Under the pieces are notes generated by a model, which worked only from the letters and a program-made list of their open reading frames with translations, was not told the DNA's origin and made no database searches. A DNA stretch of 64,000 nt from Carpediemonas membranifera BICM. Taxonomy: Eukaryota; Protista; Fornicata. The stretch is from assembly GCA_019828565.1 (NCBI GenBank), contig JAHDYR010000069.1:248001-312000 (forward strand), read 5' to 3'. Below are positions 1-62,595 of this stretch, piece by piece; the stretch's first letter is position 1, and each line of letters opens with the position of its first letter. A program made the translations under genes and the position numbers.

Positions 1-964
1 CTTGGTCTGGGTCGGCCTGACACAAGCACCAGAACCTCCTTGTCCGCCGTGCCAACGACAACAGTTCTCCCGTCGTGAGAGATTGTGACAGATAAAGATT
101 CAGTCGCGCGTTTGGCCAGGTGCGGTGGCATGCTGATGCATTTGCCACTGGCCACGTCCCATTGTCTTGAGATTCGCCCACGGGAGACCGAGAAGAGGGT
201 GCGGCCCTCAGCGGGGAAGGCGAAGCTGTTCACTTCATCATTGTCCCCATTCAACGTCTTCATCAGCCTGCCAGAGGCCACGTCCCACAGTATGATAAAT
301 GCGTCAGTCCCGCCCTAGGCGATGGTCGACCCGTCCGGGGAGACGGCGATGCAGAAAACATCATCTCCATGGTCCATTCTCATGATGCACCGTCCCATCG
401 TATTCCACAGCCTGATGCTGTTGTCGAAAGAAGCAGTGACCATGGTGCCGTCAGAGAGGAATGCCGCGCCTGCAACCCGGCTACTATGCCCTTCAAGGGT
501 CTGGATACATCCACCGTCTATCTTCGCATTCCATGTAGCAAGTGCTCGGTCAAGTCGGCTTGGTTTGTCAGCAACAAGAACGCCTTGGGTCATCGTGACA
601 GTGAGGTCGGGGTCGGTCAGCCTCATGCTGAACTCGCCGGGGAACGCCAGTGCATCCAGTGTTTCGAGGTGGTCGAGGACGCGGCTGAGGTCTGTTGCAG
701 TGAGAGGCGAAGCGCCACTGGGCTTGAGGTGGAGCTTGTGCTCTGGGGAGAAGGCGTGTTTCGTGACATCTAGCAGCATGTTGTCTACTGCTATACAGTC
801 ACTGCTATATGAGATTTTTGGGGAGGACGCACCATTGCTGAGAAGCACTGTGTGAGCGACAAAAACAGTGTAGGCATCATCACTGCTCTACAACAACGAG
901 GGAACGAACCATCTAGGTAATAGTAACAACGGGGAACGTACTTTCTTCACCGTCGAGCCTTCAT
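1..964 (-). pseudogene. WD40-repeat gene with micro-exon-encoded N-terminal Cys motif; paralogue of the 52106-56426 gene; two in-frame stops; runs off the window edge
   Basis: Predicted exons 964-942, 912-910, 847-833 and 804-<1 give MKARR*RKCASQQCSDCIAVDNML. WD repeats follow (LEGHSSRVAGAAF...ASFDNSIRLWN; VFCIAVSPDGSTIA*GGTDAFIILWD). The frame stays WD-like and open past the TAG at 315-317 to the window start. TGA at 947-949 sits where the paralogue has Cys. Confidence 0.7.
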
Positions 965-50211: not shown

Positions 50212-51108
50212 ATGAAGGCGCTAATATTGTACAGTTCTTTCACGGGAACGTGTAGGTACTATGCAAACTGCTATAAGACGGCCCTTGAGCAATCGGGTTT
50301 CACAGTTGATAAGCTCAATGCTTCGACACCGGAAACAAGGGCCACTTGCCTCAAAAAGATTGCACCGGCGCATGAATACGATGTCGTGGGCTTTGGAAGT
50401 TCTATAGCGATGGGAGGTTTCCAGAATGGCTTCAAGGACTTCGTCGAGAGAGATTTGAGCGATGACTATCTCCGTGGCAAGCGCGTCTTCACCTTCTGCA
50501 CTGCCAACGCGACGTGTGAGGGTGCGGGTGTCGTCGGCACGAACCTAGTGAAGCGGGGAGGCCAGTTCTTCTACCATGGCTTCTGGCCGTCAACCCTCAA
50601 CTGGCCACCGCTCGCCGGGCAAAAGGGTCTTCTCCTCTCAAAGGCCGACCTCGATATTCCCAGACGCCATGGTGAGGAGCTGGTCCAGCGCCTCGAACAG
50701 GGCGTGGTGACGTCTCCTCCATCAGTCCCGGCGTCTTTTAAGGTTATGTCCCATTTGGGAGTCTCGGCAAAAATGCTCGGAAAACTCGGTCTTGGCCGCG
50801 TAACAGTCGACCCAACCCGGTGCATAGGATGCGGCAAGTGTGTCCGCACGTGCCCTACTGGCGCGATGAGGATGGGCCCCACTCACGTTGCCGAAAAGGG
50901 CGCGGGTTGCCACGGATGCTTTGCCTGCTTCAACGCCTGCCCCAGCCAGGCAATCACTAAGCGTTTTGCAGACCCAGACAAGTGTCCCCAGTTCCAGTTC
51001 AACGACACTTATATCAAGATGGTCCAGACCGCTGACCTGCCCGAGAAAAAGCGGCTTAGCAAGACGGAGTGGGACGCGTTGAAGGCGAGAGTTAAGGCGA
51101 AGAAGTAG
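50212..51108 (+). CDS. Flavodoxin fused to a 2[4Fe-4S] ferredoxin (EFR1-like)
   Basis: LILYSSFTGTCRYYA FMN loop; CIGCGKCVRTCP and CHGCFACFNACP. Confidence 0.85.
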   Translation: MKALILYSSFTGTCRYYANCYKTALEQSGFTVDKLNASTPETRATCLKKIAPAHEYDVVGFGSSIAMGGFQNGFKDFVERDLSDDYLRGKRVFTFCTANATCEGAGVVGTNLVKRGGQFFYHGFWPSTLNWPPLAGQKGLLLSKADLDIPRRHGEELVQRLEQGVVTSPPSVPASFKVMSHLGVSAKMLGKLGLGRVTVDPTRCIGCGKCVRTCPTGAMRMGPTHVAEKGAGCHGCFACFNACPSQAITKRFADPDKCPQFQFNDTYIKMVQTADLPEKKRLSKTEWDALKARVKAKK

Positions 51109-52105: not shown

Positions 52106-55100
52106 TCAAGGATCGCTATTTAGAGTCCACCAACCTGGGGCGCTGGGCATGTTCGCGCGATATGTCGCCGTGACGGTACCCATCGCTGCAAACGCTGCCG
52201 CTCTTTCATCTTGCGACAGCGTCATCCACGGGGCTCTAGCATTGCCGTCTGACAGTCTGATCGTTCCCACCGTGTCCGGCGAGCACTCTCCCAGGGTCAT
52301 CATCCCCGGAGCGTTTGCCCCAGCGAAGGTGGCGACCTTATTGCTTCGAACGGCGCTCTCAGTGTACATTTCCGGACCATCGCAGACGTTGTCCGGGATG
52401 GAGGCGACGACCTGAGCAAAACTTGGGCGATCTTGCGGGTTGGGGGCCAGGCACTGGGTGATGAGGTTGGCCACCGCTTGGGGCGTGCCGACGGGTATGA
52501 TTGGGCGATAGCCGCGACAGACCTCGACCCGGATTGCATCCAGACTGAATCCTTCGAGACGGTACGGGATGTCGCGCGCGGCGATCTCCCAGAGCGTGAT
52601 GCCGAAGGCGTAGACGTCGGCCTTCTCGCCGCCCACGCCGTCGAAGCGCTCGGGCGCCATCCACGGCCACGAGCCCTCGACGTTTTTGGAGCGCTTGCTC
52701 AGCTTGGTGGTCAACCCGAAGTCGCTGATCTTCGCAGTCTCCTTCGCGACGAGGACGTTGAGCGACTTGAGATCCCGGTGCTCGTAGCCCTCGCCCACGA
52801 TAAACGCCATGGCGATGGCGATCTCCCGCGCAAACTTCAGCCGTGTGTCCCAGGGCAGGTCGGCCTTCGAGAGCAGCAGCGCCGAGAGCGACCCCGACGC
52901 GAGCTCGAGCGCGAGCCTGATCTCGCGGTCACCTTGCTCAAGGGCATACAACGCGATGACGTGCCTGTGTCGCAGCTGCTTGTGGACGAAGATCTCACCC
53001 TGCAACCTGGCTGCCTGGACCGCGTTCAGGCCAGTCATGTCGACGACCTTGACGGCACACTCGCTGCCGCCGTACATGCCTCGGAAGACAGACGCCATGC
53101 CGCCCTGGCCGATGCGGTCGGTTACCTGGTGCATGATGCTTCCTGCAGGCTTGGTGATGTCCGCGTTGAGGCGTGAGCTATCGACAAGTTCATCCGCACC
53201 GTGGCTCAAGAGATAGACCAGGTGTGAGTTCTTACGGGCTACATGGGCAGCCGTCTTACCACGGAAGGAGAGCGTCGTGTCGGCACCGTGTTTCAGGAGG
53301 AGGGTGGCGGCATGAATGCTGCTAGTCTTGACTGCGGTGAACAGGGGCGGAGTGGTCGTCCCGTCCTTCGCCCCATCCACTGGCGCTCCTGCCATGAGCA
53401 GAGTGTCAGCTAGCTCCAAGTCACCATGGGCGATCGCCTTGTTGAGTCGGCGAGTCAAGATTGAATCGACTCCGTGGCGAATGAGACGAGTCATGAGCGG
53501 GTCGGCGACGGACTTCACCGCCTGTACGGCGTTCGTCCCGACTGAAGGGAGGAGGGGGTCGGCGCCGTTGTCCAGAAGGAACGTCGCAGAGTCCCAGTGG
53601 CCGCCCTGGATGGCGAGTACGAGGGCAGTTGTGTTCCGGCTGACGACGTTGACATCTACCTTTCTGACCTTCACCAGAGTCTCGAGCATCGCTGGCTTCG
53701 CCACGGCCCCGAGAACAGGAGGCCCTGACGGGAAATCGAGGACGCACTTGGCCTTGAGCAGCAGCTCGAAGACATGACCCTGGTCGCGGTCGAAGGCCAC
53801 GTGGAGGGGCGAGGAGCCGGCCCGGTCACGGATATTGGCCACAACAGCGCCGTAACGCTTGTCCTTCAGAGCTTGCTTCACCTTGCGGACGTCGCCAGTC
53901 GCCACTCTTTCGAGGAAGACGTCGCTCCGTTCTAGTGCCTCCCGAACCTTCCCGCGGAGGGCGGGCATCGGGTCTTTTGCCATGGATCGGGCGGGCTTGA
54001 GTCGTTCGAAGTCGGCCCCGACCTGACCCAGTTGTGTCGCGTGCTGCTTCACTAAATCAGCGAGACGGTCGGGGGATAAAACGGTGTGAATGAATGAGAG
54101 CAGTCCCTCAGTCTTAAGGAGGTCTGCCTCCTCGTAAAGGGCGCGGTCGAGGGCCACCATCTGGTCGGCAATTGAGTGTCTCAGCTTCCATCCCTCAAGA
54201 GCTTTCCACTCAAGCTGAAACTCATCCAGCAGCTTGGCCAGGGGAGTTCCACTGTCGCCAGTGACTATTAGCCCACTCCAGTGGACGGTGTCGAGGGACA
54301 CTGTGGCTGGCGGGGTTGTTACCATCCTGATCTTGATGCTCTCGGGGACCTCATCAAACTTCTTGATATGATTGAGGATACGGACGAGATCGTCGGTGCG
54401 ACACCCAACCCACTGTTGCGGGGGGTCGACGTGGATCACGGTCTGGGCTGTTATCGGGTTCTTACAGATCTGGTCGACCAGCTGGCCGAGCCTGCGGATG
54501 TTCAGGGGCAGAAGAATCTTCCCAATCTCGTCAATCATTTGATTAGTGGTAGTAAAAAACTTGTATGGGTCCAACACCACCGCAGTTCTGGGGAAAGTGA
54601 GCTGCATCCCGAATGAGTTCAGCTGGAGGCCGTTATTGACGACCGCCTTGGTGATGTGCTCGATAACCTGCGTCAGATGGCCCAGATCGGCCCCAGAGTG
54701 CGGTGGGAACCAGAAGTTGATATCAGAGCTCACCGGACCTGAGCAAAAGCCGGTAACAAGACCGTTCACGCGACACTTGTTGAACAACACGATGAGCCCG
54801 AGCACGTCAGGACTGCGCGACTCAGTCACGAGGAACTTGCCCCGATCCATGGTGATAGTCGCAGCGGGGTGGGTCAGAGTGACAGTCAATGACCGCGGGG
54901 CAGTGTTGGAGGCGAGTATGTGGACTAGAATGCGGGCTAGGTCGTCGAGGAAGACAGGCTGGTCGCTGCGGATGGTGATGTCAGTGGTACGCGTGACGTA
55001 ACGACGGCAGGTCTGGTCAATCTCGGCCGAAAACTGAGCTGACCGCGCCTGAGTGTCCCAGAGCTTGGCCGTGCCGTCACCAGAGCCAGAGGCGAGGGTC

Positions 55101-56426
55101 TCCCCGTCCGGGGAGAATGCGAGTCGCTTGATGACTCGCTCATGGCCCTTGAACTCACGGCTGGAGCCATCAGCCAGGTTCCACAGTCTGATCGCCCAAT
55201 CCCAGCCACCAGATGCCAGGCGACCGTCAGCGGAGAACGCGAGACAGTTCACATATCGCGCATGGCCGGTCAAGGATCGGATATGTTCACCAGTTTTCAC
55301 AGACCAGAGTTCGATAGCATTTGTCGCAAAAGAAGAAGCTGTGGCAACAAGCTCACCGTCTGGCGACACCGCCAAGCAGTCTATGCCGCGCCTGGTGTAC
55401 GCATCGAATCCTATGACCCTTACCTCGTCATACGACTCGGCCGACCAGACCCTGACTCGACCGTCCATGCCAGCTGACAATAGGATGTTGTCAGAGACGA
55501 ACTGGACGCATTTCACGGACTTGTTGTGGCCTTGGAACTTGTGTGAGAGGTAGCTTTGGCCGCTGAGAACGCGTTTGACTGTACTGAAACTGCTGACGCG
55601 CCACAGTTTGACTGTCTTGTCATCAGAGCATGAAGCGAGAGTCTTTCCGTCAGGGGAGAAGGCGAGGCCACGCACCCAGTCGTTGTGGGCCTCTAGAGCT
55701 ATGACTTGGCGGCCGCTCTCGAGGTCCCACAGCTTGATCGTCTTGTCTCCAGCTGACGCGACCGTGGATCCGTCAGGAGAGATCGCGATGTCACAGATAA
55801 ACCCACCGTTGTTCATCCAGGACCTATGGGCACCCGACTCGGCGTCCCACACGGCCAGCATCTTATCCTTGGAGGCCGTCACGACCCGGGTAGAGTCAGG
55901 TGTGTATGCTATGGCGACCACTTCATTACTGTTGCCGGTAATCGTCCTTATACAGTTGCCGGCCCTGGAGAAGCCTCTGCGGTGGCTTAAGTTCCAGGCA
56001 GCGAGGACGAGGTCGACCTGGTTGTGGCGAAGAGTTGCCACGAGCTCGCCGCTGGGGTGTTGGAGGGAGACGGTCACAATGGGGCTGGTGAGGGTCATGG
56101 TGAAGCTTAGAGGCTTGATTCTAGCGGAAAGGAGATGAGTGACAACGCGTTCCAGGTCTGTGATGGTGAGTGGCGTCTTCTCACGGGGGATTAGTCGAAT
56201 ATGAAGTGGTGGATTGTGGGCAAAGAGCTTGGATAGCTGGTCATCAATGAAGCTGCAGTTCTTGCTGTGTGAGAGGCTGCGGATTGGACGGACCATGGAC
56301 TGGATAACGATGGAATCGATGAGCGTACGTCTCAGAGGAGCTGTGTGGGAAAGTGATCGGGGAGAACGAACCATCTATGTAAATAACCACTGGATGCGGT
56401 ACAAACAGCGAGCAATGTCGCCTCAT
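52106..56426 (-). CDS. C4 zinc finger, novel repeated domain, WD40 propeller, ankyrin repeats and TKL-type protein kinase; four 5' introns
   Basis: Exons 56426-56407, 56374-56372, 56340-56329, 56299-56294 and 56264-52106. About 7 WD repeats; ankyrins (GSSPLHVA, TTALVLAI, PPLFTAV); kinase motifs GQGGMASV, AVK, HRDLKSLN, DFG and WMAPE. Confidence 0.85.
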
Positions 56427-56744: not shown

Positions 56745-57335
56745 TCACGAATTATGAACTTGATTCCATGAGTTATGATCAGGTGTGTTATAGTTGCTGT
56801 TTGAGAGCCCCTCGAAAGCTTCTTCCGGGACTTCGCGCCTAAAAACGATTGCTGGAGCTCCAGGACAAGTCTCTGGGATTGGAGAACCAACAGGTGTGGT
56901 AAATTCGTCCGGTATAGTATCTGTCGCCTGCATTTCTCCCAATCCAAACATTTCCCACGCTTTTGCTTTGCCCGCGGCGCCTAATTGCGCAAAAGTGCGC
57001 TTCATCTCCCGAGCAGCCTCTTGATCGACCTGAGCGAACGTAGTGTCCTGTATTCTATCCGTGTAATGGTCAGGGGATCCTGTGCCCCAGCCGCTACCCT
57101 TGGTGTCTTGGTTGGATCCATCGGACCGACATGCAGGGGATGCCATACGACCGGGACGATTGGGTGTCGGGCAGCAAGGCCCATGCCGACGGTGATGTCG
57201 TCTGTATTGAGTAGCATCATTGTCTGAATGCTGCTTTGCTCCAGTTGCGTCCCGTAACTTGCTTGTCATGAGTAGTGTTGTCGCCGTGGATGCTGTGAGA
57301 GATTGCACTGTGGAATATACGATATATGATTGCAT
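56745..57335 (-). CDS. Small hypothetical protein
   Basis: 196-aa ORF filling the gap between confident genes; low complexity; start uncertain. Confidence 0.35.
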   Translation of the reverse strand: MQSYIVYSTVQSLTASTATTLLMTSKLRDATGAKQHSDNDATQYRRHHRRHGPCCPTPNRPGRMASPACRSDGSNQDTKGSGWGTGSPDHYTDRIQDTTFAQVDQEAAREMKRTFAQLGAAGKAKAWEMFGLGEMQATDTIPDEFTTPVGSPIPETCPGAPAIVFRREVPEEAFEGLSNSNYNTPDHNSWNQVHNS

Positions 57336-58710: not shown

Positions 58711-61700
58711 TTATAATGGCCCTCTAGCGTTGCCGTTGACCCAATTCACATGGTCCCTGATCCCTTCCCACATCGTCTCAACATACCCGTCCTGCCGCGT
58801 GGCAAACCGGTACTGACTCGCCACAAACTCGTCAAATACTGGGCGATCGATTGTAGCCGCCCTGATGCTTTTGGGCTGGGGCGCCATCGGATCGTACGAG
58901 TAAAGTGGCCAGAACCCGCAGCGTACGGCACGTTTCATGGCCGGCAGGGATTGTGACAGACCACCGCTGAGCTTCCAGTCCTTGCACGGGGCGAGGGCAA
59001 CGAGCAAACTCGGACCAGGGTACTCAAAGGCGCGTCTCATGCATTGTATCGTGTGCAACGGGTCAGACAGTGAAATCTGAGCGACGTACGCGTTGGTCCC
59101 GACGTACTGGCGGGCAATCGGGTCTGGCCACCGCACGGCAGAGTCTGTACTGCTCGTCTCGTACTGCCCGTCTGCTATTACTAGCCGGACCCGATCACTC
59201 CGGTTCATGGCGTGCATGATTGAGGACTTGTTTGCCCGTGCCCAGCGGTCACTGCCTGTCGTGACGACCTGGACGGGCTCGAGGAATGATAGGAGCTTCT
59301 TGATCACACCCAGGGCCCTAGCATCGGGGGAGAAGAGGTCGTTGTTGTCGTAATACGACTCGATCAGCTCGTGCTGGAACACGTGTGCCACAAAATCGTG
59401 TATATCGCGTGCGTGGTCAGGATTATCGCCCAGGGTCAGCCACCGCCGCAGGGCTGGTACTAGACCCGAGCTGATGTCCGTGAGCATCGGTGTGGGGAGG
59501 TAGGCGTTCACCCCGCCAGCCTGGTAGTATGGGTTCGACGAGGACTGTGTCTCCACGAGCGTGTTGATCTGCCGCGTAAGCTCGGCCCGGACGTGTGCGA
59601 GCCTGCTTACAATACCCATCGCGTGCTCCATGGCGTTGCCCGGGGTTGACCTGGTGAAGCACGGGGCGGTATCCGCAGCGCTGACGTCAGCCTGGAGGGC
59701 ACTGCTGTTGACCGTGGCCAGGTTGGAAGTGATGCAGCCGTCTGAACCGACGAAGATGACGTTACTGCCGACGAGCTGGGTGAGGAGCTTGAGGTAAGCA
59801 GGGATACCACAGCCGGGGCACGAGTTATCGGACACGTAAAGAGGTCTGAACAGCTGGCTCCCTTCTACTGTGTGGCGAAGCTCCGTGATGTCCTCTAACG
59901 AATACTGGTCTGCCATAAAACTGCCCTCCTTGAGCTTCGAACCCACGTACCCGAGTGACCTCGCCCTTTCCTTGTTGGACTTGGCGTCTGGGTCAGAATC
60001 GACGTGAATGGGTGTGAGGCTGTCAGTCGGACAGGCCTGGTAGCACACGCCGCACTCAGTACACAGCTGCTGGTTGACCTGGACCCTGAACATGAAGCCT
60101 GGATCACTGATGGGCGGCCTGGAGAGGAGTTTGGCTGGTAGACCGATGAATGGCCGCTTGCTCTTCTCCTTGGGGTCCGCCTGGTACCTCTTGCTCGCCC
60201 TGAAGTCGGCGTCGTCCTCGTCCTCCCTCCAGTGGATTATCCGGAGAGCCCCATGGGGGCAAGCGAGGCTGCACTGGTAGCACTGGGTGCAGAACTGGGG
60301 CAGCCACGACGGCACGTGCTTGGCCATGGACTCGTACGCCCTTCTGAGCTCGCCCCCGCCCAGCTGGCCCTGCTCGGACATGATATGGCCGCGGTCGCCG
60401 TACGCCATAGCCTTAATATCATCGACTAGGGGGGCCTCGATGTTGCCCGCCTCTACCATCTCGGGCCCAACGTCTGTGGAGGACGCGGCGGCCCAGGAGA
60501 CGGGCGAATACTCGACCTCGCGGAAGATCTCGTGTGCGGGGACGTCGCAGAGCGTGGTACCCGCAGCCCTGGGGAGGATGGCGTTGCTGGCCATGGACAC
60601 CACCGTGGCGTTCTCGATCCGCTTGTTCTTAAGACCCGTCGAGTCTCGTGGGAGGATATCGAGCAGGGAGGTCATAAATGTCCCAACACTGTGCATGGTA
60701 GCCGTTCTCTCTGGCAGGTGGCGCCAGATCGAGTGCGGTTGGTCGTATTTGCCCAGGAAGAGGCACACACAGGCTGTGGCCATCGCCGTGCTCTGTTTCC
60801 TGGGCGATAGGCCACAGGCGCGGTTGATGGCTCCGATGTCGATGGCGTAGAGCTTGGCATGGCGGTCTGCAATGATTTTCTTGAATCGGGGTGGGAGCAC
60901 CTTGTCAAAGTCGGTGTCCGGCTTCATATTGATCACAACAGTGGCGCCCTCCTTGATGTAGTCAAGATATTGGAGTTTTGTCAGATATGGCAAATTGATC
61001 CCGACAAAATTGGCCATACCCCGCTGCATGTAGGGGTCGTCGTGGGCCGTGTGGCCGATGTGGAGCAGGGTAGCGCACTGGCCTAACGCCATACGCTCGT
61101 CGCTCTCTCTAAACTGGTGGGTCACACGTAAATCCGTCGTGCGGTCGACCATCTTCGCCAAAGCACGCGATACAGTCTTCGTCCCGTCAGCCCCTGTTCC
61201 AAAGAACATGATGTCCACCCCCTCTGCATCCGAGAGTCTTAGGGGCGGGTCAGTGTCGTTGTTGACGATGCTAAGTGACTCAAGCCCGACTGCATTAGCC
61301 AGGCCGACCGAGATATGGTCCATAGGCTTGGGAAGGGCCATGTTCTCGAACAGGGTGAGTCCGTTGCGGGGCGAGAGGGTGTGGCCGCCGATGCCATGGG
61401 TCGCCCCGAGGATTTTGACGTCTGCCTTGCCAGCCCGCACCATGGCCTCGAGAATATCGTAGTAGAGGGGGTTCCTGGGCTGGGAGGGGGTCTCCAGCGT
61501 CCTGTCGAGCACGGTAATATGCTCCAGCCCCCGCATCATCTTGAGCCAATAAATGAGGTAATCAAACGGGAACGGACGGTACAGCGACACGGTGAACAGC
61601 CCGACCCGCCTGTCGCCGTGCTTGTTCATGTGGTTGACCACGCGTTTGAGTGTCTCTGTGCAGCTCCCCATTCCGATGAGGACGTCCTGAACCTGGGTGA

Positions 61701-62595
61701 TCGGTGCGCCGTAGTACTCGACCGGGTCGTATCGGCGGCCTGTGGCTCGGCCAAAGCGTTCCATGACGTTCTGGACGCGTTCGGGAGCCCGGTTGAACCA
61801 ATCGTTCGCGCGTTCGAAGCCGTGGAAGTATGTGTCGCTGTTGCCGATGGTTCCTCGCATGGCAGGGCGAGAGGGGGATAGCCGCTGCTCCATGAACCCG
61901 TCCAGTATCTCCCTGGGCATCAGCTCACGAAGAGATACCTCGTCTAGCATGGAAATTTGCTGGGTTTGGTTGAGAATCTTTGTCCCGTCGAAGAAATGGA
62001 GGAAGGGGAGGTGGCACTCGACAGCGGCGACCTGGCTGAGGATGGCGAAGTCGTAGGCCGACTGGACGGACGTGCTTGACACCATGGGGATCCCGGTTGA
62101 CCGCACGCTCATGACATCACTGTGGTCAGGAAACATTGAGGATTCCTGGCGAGTAATGGCGCGGGAGGGGATGTTGAAGACTACGGGGAGGCCGTCACCG
62201 ACTATACGGTGGAGGACAGGGGCTTGGAGGACGAGGGCGTCGCCGCAGGTGATTGAGGAGACGAGAGAACCGGTGGTAGCGGCACCGTGAATGCAACCTG
62301 CGGCCCCTAGTTCGCTTGGGAGTTCGTGAACGTCGATTCGATTGCCATAGCAGTTGACGCGAGGATTTCTCGTGAACGAACGGGCGATGTGATGTGCAGG
62401 CGTAACTCGCGAGTGGATGATCATCTCACTGAACGCACTGGCAGCATGGGATATCGCCTCAATCCCTGTCACCAAAGATGGCAGGGAGGCGTTGTCTTTC
62501 ATGATTTGTGAGGCCGTTTTGGTAATGACTTTAAAGTGCTCCTTCTTGGCATGGTACCCAACTCGAGAAATTATGACGACGCACGTGTCTGACAT
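58711..62595 (-). CDS. PFO: Pyruvate:ferredoxin oxidoreductase homologue, highly divergent
   Basis: SELGAAGCIHGA, DHSDVMSVRSTG, PFLHFFDG, LYRPFP and GTGADGT; ferredoxin motifs CTQCYQCSLACP and CTECGVCYQACP; CPGCG, LAPC and GFWPLY. Confidence 0.9.
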   Translation of the reverse strand: MSDTCVVIISRVGYHAKKEHFKVITKTASQIMKDNASLPSLVTGIEAISHAASAFSEMIIHSRVTPAHHIARSFTRNPRVNCYGNRIDVHELPSELGAAGCIHGAATTGSLVSSITCGDALVLQAPVLHRIVGDGLPVVFNIPSRAITRQESSMFPDHSDVMSVRSTGIPMVSSTSVQSAYDFAILSQVAAVECHLPFLHFFDGTKILNQTQQISMLDEVSLRELMPREILDGFMEQRLSPSRPAMRGTIGNSDTYFHGFERANDWFNRAPERVQNVMERFGRATGRRYDPVEYYGAPITQVQDVLIGMGSCTETLKRVVNHMNKHGDRRVGLFTVSLYRPFPFDYLIYWLKMMRGLEHITVLDRTLETPSQPRNPLYYDILEAMVRAGKADVKILGATHGIGGHTLSPRNGLTLFENMALPKPMDHISVGLANAVGLESLSIVNNDTDPPLRLSDAEGVDIMFFGTGADGTKTVSRALAKMVDRTTDLRVTHQFRESDERMALGQCATLLHIGHTAHDDPYMQRGMANFVGINLPYLTKLQYLDYIKEGATVVINMKPDTDFDKVLPPRFKKIIADRHAKLYAIDIGAINRACGLSPRKQSTAMATACVCLFLGKYDQPHSIWRHLPERTATMHSVGTFMTSLLDILPRDSTGLKNKRIENATVVSMASNAILPRAAGTTLCDVPAHEIFREVEYSPVSWAAASSTDVGPEMVEAGNIEAPLVDDIKAMAYGDRGHIMSEQGQLGGGELRRAYESMAKHVPSWLPQFCTQCYQCSLACPHGALRIIHWREDEDDADFRASKRYQADPKEKSKRPFIGLPAKLLSRPPISDPGFMFRVQVNQQLCTECGVCYQACPTDSLTPIHVDSDPDAKSNKERARSLGYVGSKLKEGSFMADQYSLEDITELRHTVEGSQLFRPLYVSDNSCPGCGIPAYLKLLTQLVGSNVIFVGSDGCITSNLATVNSSALQADVSAADTAPCFTRSTPGNAMEHAMGIVSRLAHVRAELTRQINTLVETQSSSNPYYQAGGVNAYLPTPMLTDISSGLVPALRRWLTLGDNPDHARDIHDFVAHVFQHELIESYYDNNDLFSPDARALGVIKKLLSFLEPVQVVTTGSDRWARANKSSIMHAMNRSDRVRLVIADGQYETSSTDSAVRWPDPIARQYVGTNAYVAQISLSDPLHTIQCMRRAFEYPGPSLLVALAPCKDWKLSGGLSQSLPAMKRAVRCGFWPLYSYDPMAPQPKSIRAATIDRPVFDEFVASQYRFATRQDGYVETMWEGIRDHVNWVNGNARGPL

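Follow-up and report, generated by a model that had tools for sequence, protein, structure and literature searches.

A cassette of 3-, 12- and 6-nt micro-exons at the start of a WD40-ankyrin-kinase gene of Carpediemonas membranifera recurs in its gene family

Micro-exons of 1–15 nt are known from plants and animals as tiny, conserved internal exons that supply conserved residues, are missed by annotation and often have a detained upstream intron; around plant micro-exons, such detained introns are a common and known intermediate (PMC8831610). In Schistosoma, runs of short exons, mostly multiples of three in length, characterize the micro-exon genes (MEGs), a lineage-specific multigene family (bioRxiv 10.1101/2023.06.21.545858). 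Introns of diplomonads and parabasalids are uniformly short (about 35–45 nt) and carry an extended donor and a branch point fused to the 3′ splice site, and hairpins that shorten the longer introns have been described in diplomonads related to Carpediemonas (PMC6679479). At the protein level, C4 zinc-binding modules of the treble-clef and knuckle-helix types consist of two CxxC pairs, of which the second opens a helix.

The gene described here lies in a 64,000-nt stretch of the Carpediemonas membranifera genome (the window; G000:C68:248001-312000) and encodes a putative sensor kinase. Its micro-exons are internal exons of at most 15 nt, each between two introns and conserved in position and phase. 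Unlike the plant and animal examples, they are stacked between introns of about 29 nt, all in phase 2, and divide a single motif of 13 residues, in a free-living protist with few introns. A series of symmetric exons is common to MEGs and this family. MEG introns span 0.1–5 kb, whereas those of the Carpediemonas family measure 28–68 nt (mostly 28–32 nt, shorter than in diplomonads and parabasalids). Micro-exons form most of the coding sequence of MEGs but only 21 of 4,200 nt here, and MEG products begin with a signal peptide, whereas the N-terminus here, judged by eye, is basic and Cys-rich and has none. Compared with C4 modules, the spacer between the two pairs is 4–5 residues, up to 12, and the first pair encloses 2–15 residues. 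We found no literature on micro-exons in Carpediemonas and no report of introns stacked around micro-exons in diplomonads or parabasalids. The cassette is real and unannotated, short micro-exons as such being already known in plants, animals and schistosomes.

The preliminary description of this DNA had proposed four consecutive introns ahead of a kinase reading frame, and their coordinates, ends and lengths (32, 31, 29 and 29 nt) were reproduced (Table 1), together with their common phase 2 and the micro-exon lengths in multiples of three. All four introns start with GT, end with AG and carry A at position −6. Micro-exons 2, 3 and 4 read ATG, a 12-mer and TCCATG. Joining the exons of 20, 3, 12 and 6 nt to the main exon yields 1400 stop-free codons beginning MRRHCSLCSSETPCKNC, so that the predicted spliced product starts with C-x2-C-x5-C-x2-C. 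Under a loose intron pattern, this four-intron chain was the sole chain in the window; shuffled 64-kb strands gave 0.18 chains of two and 0.003 chains of three per strand, and no chain of four in 1,500 shuffles. Elsewhere, the window contains a pyruvate:ferredoxin oxidoreductase-like gene (58711-62595, minus strand) and a flavodoxin-ferredoxin fusion gene (50212-51108, plus strand).

Table 1 Features of the two family members in the window (all on the minus strand).
Feature	Position	Strand	Description	Basis
Exon 1, coding part	56407..56426	-	20 nt, M-R-R-H-C-S-L, holds Cys1	Joined frame; paralogues
Intron 1	56375..56406	-	32 nt, GT-AG, phase 2	Position conserved in paralogues; removal inferred
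Micro-exon 2	56372..56374	-	3 nt, N-TG; TG gives first two bases of Cys2 codon	
Intron 2	56341..56371	-	31 nt, phase 2, off-consensus C at −8	
Micro-exon 3	56329..56340	-	12 nt	Present in RNA contig X1:8
Intron 3	56300..56328	-	29 nt, phase 2	Absent from RNA contig X1:8
Micro-exon 4	56294..56299	-	6 nt (TCCATG), last bases TG of Cys3	Letters in X1:8
Intron 4	56265..56293	-	29 nt, phase 2	Absent from RNA contig X1:8
Main exon, start	55946..56264	-	Cys4, helix, ~95-aa lineage-specific alpha/beta domain	
Main exon, remainder	52106..55945	-	WD40 propeller, more domain repeats, ankyrin repeats, TKL-type kinase	Pfam
Second family member	804..964	-	3/15 type; Cys1 codon is TGA, broken copy	
Second member, exon 1	964-942	-		
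Second member, first intron	941-913	-		
Second member, micro-exon	912-910	-	3 nt	
Second member, second intron	909-848	-		
Second member, micro-exon	847-833	-	15 nt	
Second member, third intron	832-805	-		

The suggestion that the gene belongs to a micro-exon family was borne out by a scan of the C. membranifera genome (24,237,836 bases, 69 contigs, ~57% GC; 24.2 Mb, 69 contigs and 57.1% GC in PMC8516963 Table 1). Residues 1–106 encoded by the main exon matched 146 places, and the cassette was found again upstream of copies of the N-terminal domain. The pattern acceptor-NTG-donor occurred 42 times against 2 in the control, 40 of the 42 being family members, and cassette copies number about 50 (about 53 with other loci, some decayed). 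Seventeen copies were parsed as a 3/12/6-nt type encoding C-x2-C-x5-C-x2-C and 21 as a 3/15-nt type encoding C-x2-C-x4-C-x2-C. Micro-exon 3 is 12 nt long in all 17 copies of the former type, most of which share the 20-nt coding exon 1, and basic R-R precedes Cys1 in most copies. Exon lengths are constant across copies, while intron lengths and interiors drift in any frame, intron 2 reaching 41–68 nt in most paralogues. Among the exon bases that never vary are the TG pairs of intron-split Cys codons, and the 3-nt exon reads N-TG, TG making up two-thirds of a Cys codon. The 109 distinct family introns parsed showed an extended donor and a fixed distance from branch point to AG, a consensus that the parser score itself favoured.

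All family introns fall in phase 2, and the length of any intact internal exon is divisible by three, also in divergent members with shifted intron positions. One member (L077) has exons of 9/3/12 nt with the phase and Cys pattern kept. Another (L032; G000:C2:128800, plus strand), which likewise keeps both, has exons of 3/39 nt, in which 39 nt equals 12 + 21 + 6 and intron 3 appears to have turned into 21 nt of in-frame exon. The extreme is a short member (L072:2067-3089; G000:C4, plus strand) in which 15 phase-2 introns delimit 14 micro-exons (eleven of 3 nt, two of 6 nt and one of 9 nt) before the same domain; it reads C-x15-C-x5-C-x2-C, and its public model (J8273_1030) begins downstream of the micro-exons. 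The uniform phase may go back to an ancient duplication in which each unit comprised intron and exon, or to selection for skip tolerance. Recent tandem duplication was rejected as the origin of the introns, whose interiors are no more similar to one another than shuffled sequences. Signs of decay were also seen. Intron-like segments at cassette positions of L036, L037 and L093 start with GA instead of GT, through decay or as non-canonical donors, and L047 has a GC donor. Exon 1 of L004, L006, L007, L008, L018 and L040 carries TGA stops, mostly at CGA positions, which suggests repeated pseudogenisation.

RNA was represented by assembled contigs of four runs (X1-X4) from one 2017 study. Runs X2-X4 are cDNA, as poly(A) tails on the gene upstream of the kinase indicate; X1 is cDNA-like, its RNA status being a classification guess. 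That upstream gene (56745-57335, minus strand) is well expressed and without Pfam match, and its poly(A) site lies at ~56542, 115 nt ahead of the kinase ATG. A joint between 56265 and 56329 in contig 8 of X1 (depth 3.4), with the letters of the 6-nt exon between the two sides, shows that introns 3 and 4 have been spliced out and that exons 3 and 4 are present. All RNA support for the cassette comes from this one low-depth contig of one study, with possible retention of intron 2; other X1 contigs spread along the rest of the main exon. The public models of two paralogues (P0012 and P0014) splice out the equivalent of intron 4. P0012 opens (residues 1-40) with another kind of Cys/His-rich motif, placed before the family domain, which may stem from a gene fusion or from a mis-joined model.

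We propose, with reasonable confidence in the account as a whole, that the gene is one of an expanded family of WD40-ankyrin-kinases in C. membranifera, that its ultra-short introns are excised one by one, that the 3-, 12- and 6-nt exons are constitutively spliced together and that the resulting tip forms a zinc-binding cap. Each of the four introns would be recognized by the spliceosome through its own signals, namely a GTNYG donor, a branch point fused to the 3′ splice site and a length of ~29 nt, with longer introns perhaps folded back by a hairpin. If introns are recognized singly and removed in turn, exon size sets no lower limit. Such intron-defined, sequential splicing is the most likely mechanism, and the family proteins may have a signalling role. 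Predicted stems bring the long variants of intron 2 to an effective length of mostly 22–35 nt; these hairpins are mostly no stronger than those of shuffles (z from −3 to +1.6). Counting against the proposal, one member (L078) has a single 3-nt exon without Cys, and the N-terminus is broken in 9 of the 38 cleanly parsed copies, the other 29 having all four Cys.

The main exon matched WD40 (PF00400), ankyrin (PF12796) and kinase (PF07714, PK_Tyr_Ser-Thr) profiles in one chain, an architecture of WD40, ankyrin and TKL kinase that is also found in paralogues, and the core of the ~95-aa domain is repeated within the protein. A profile of this domain had 27 matches among 1.84 billion representatives; those looked up were from C. 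membranifera, except one weak match to a 3406-aa protein. Fold searches with the domain gave no clear match (best Z 4.6, best TM 0.50), and a feature search of the ESM Atlas returned a blank result. In the AF2 model of a paralogue with Cys3 and Cys4 (pLDDT 84), the second CxxC lies at the start of the first helix, where pLDDT is only ~60.

The preliminary description had postulated a hidden N-terminal C4 zinc finger. A four-Cys start in frame with the kinase was recovered, and its reading as a zinc finger depends on the conserved Cys. Zinc binding is plausible: structural zinc sites typically keep four Cys while tolerating loops of 2–15 residues, and have a CxxC where a helix begins. We take the four Cys to be a probable site for zinc, most likely one ion, and they would cap the first helix of an interaction domain specific to the lineage. 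We regard as unlikely, yet worth serious thought, a role of the four Cys without zinc, be it in an iron-sulfur centre, a redox or oxygen sensor, or an S-acylated membrane anchor. The anaerobic host, the many Fe-S proteins encoded nearby and the R-R before Cys1 would suit such roles, and we know of no zinc-finger family to which the short Cys spacer could be assigned with confidence; the features typical of structural zinc argue against them.

A further reading, originally put forward as possible variation of the finger by alternative splicing, is that skipping of the symmetric micro-exons is regulated and produces finger variants as in schistosomes. The family-wide phase and exon lengths are compatible with skipping, even though intron positions vary by subfamily; all 8 skip combinations leave the reading frame of the window copy open, and the loop of the 15-intron member consists largely of one-codon exons. 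However, skipped forms, proven as isoforms for the Schistosoma MEGs, were found in none of the RNA contigs of the region, which contain one low-depth joint, and that joint shows inclusion. Loss of exon 2 or 4 would moreover delete a Cys conserved across the family, and a uniform phase is also expected if exons arose by duplication of intron+exon units. Regulated skipping is therefore rather improbable, and the inclusion seen in the RNA joint and the deletion of family-wide Cys by most skips make constitutive micro-exons probable. An extension of the skipping idea, in which one-codon-scale exons, all in phase 2, serve this unicellular predator as a diversity generator whose combinatorial skipping varies the loops and the Cys set of the N-terminal metal site in its putative sensor kinases and switches their oligomerisation or activity, strikes us as distinctly improbable.

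We infer the removal of introns 1 and 2 from the paralogues. The window copy might instead splice introns 3 and 4 only, introns 1 and 2 being coding or detained, in which case the four-Cys motif would not form. In contig 8 of X1, 23 letters follow the joint before the contig ends; exon 3 accounts for 12 of them, and 11 lie beyond it. Their placement runs colinearly into intron 2 (a depth of 1.05 fits 57 nt); with the end of intron 2 retained, 23/23 of them would match, and with exons 2 and 1 spliced on, 17/23. We consider retention of intron 2 more likely for the molecule behind this contig, in line with a partly spliced intermediate of the kind described around plant micro-exons. Retention of both introns (63 nt) is in frame and stop-free in the window copy, and the C at −8 of intron 2 departs from the consensus. 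On the other hand, both introns have donor and acceptor motifs and a length of ~30 nt, and in most paralogues the two do not add up to a multiple of three. We consider a gene that splices only introns 3 and 4 very improbable, and retain the excision of all four introns as the preferred reading.

None of the 27 public models returned contains the four-Cys start; they read through the introns or begin downstream. A protein search with the N-terminal region matched only the window's own deposited model (P0001), and one with a short family member matched only its own truncated model. It is hardly credible that P0001, the unspliced 1422-aa ORF starting from the ATG of the 3-nt exon (56374), is the correct product, as this ORF does exist but RNA in which introns 3 and 4 are removed contradicts it as the sole product, the exon is CTG in half of the family, and the frame is not conserved. 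The proposal that the 3-nt exon provides an alternative start finds no support: among 42 loci, the exon reads CTG in 21, ATG in 20 and TTG in 1. Its companion claim, that this ATG is in frame with the kinase when the downstream introns are retained, is true of the window copy, but the frame concerned holds in only 2 of the 17 copies of the 3/12/6 type, intron-retention frames not being conserved among paralogues. Judged from these comparisons, that the 3-nt exon is an ATG is a coincidence.

Candidate micro-exons were also found outside the family. A pattern of an intron, 1–9 nt and a donor had 63 matches in the genome against 19 in the control, several of them in unrelated genes; a broader pattern with exons of 1–21 nt gave 59 against 95, dominated by repeats. 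In a CK2-beta gene (L100:501-1170; G000:C16:90900, plus strand), a 1-nt exon (G) lies between introns of 31 and 32 nt and forms the middle of a Trp codon, just ahead of the residue aligning with position 10 of a solved chain; position 9 of human CK2-beta is Trp. In a PP2C gene (L095:2443-2508; G000:C54, minus strand), a 3-nt phase-0 exon supplies the Met of the MED motif, here R-R-T-M-E-D. These cases suggest that tolerance of micro-exons could be a property of the C. membranifera spliceosome rather than of one family. Further candidates are 3-nt exons in a nucleotide-cyclase-like gene (L091:512-576) and a small conserved-looking gene (L076; G000:C1:322016, minus strand), and a 5-nt exon in a gene for a secreted protein (L081; G000:C4:286879, minus strand). 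In metagenomes, a pattern of two consecutive 3-nt exons matched at least 120 stretches, and among the 80 listed there was no non-repetitive intron chain with 3-nt exons.

These results correct the N-terminus of about 50 putative signalling proteins and add a conserved Cys module that is absent from the public models returned. A streamlined, intron-poor metamonad thus splices exons of 6 nt, and probably of 1–3 nt, between introns of ~29 nt. The family is a small, naturally occurring case in which to study how neighbouring splice sites that lie too close for joint occupancy are dealt with by a spliceosome, and its uniform phase despite shifting intron positions bears on clustered intron gain and loss.
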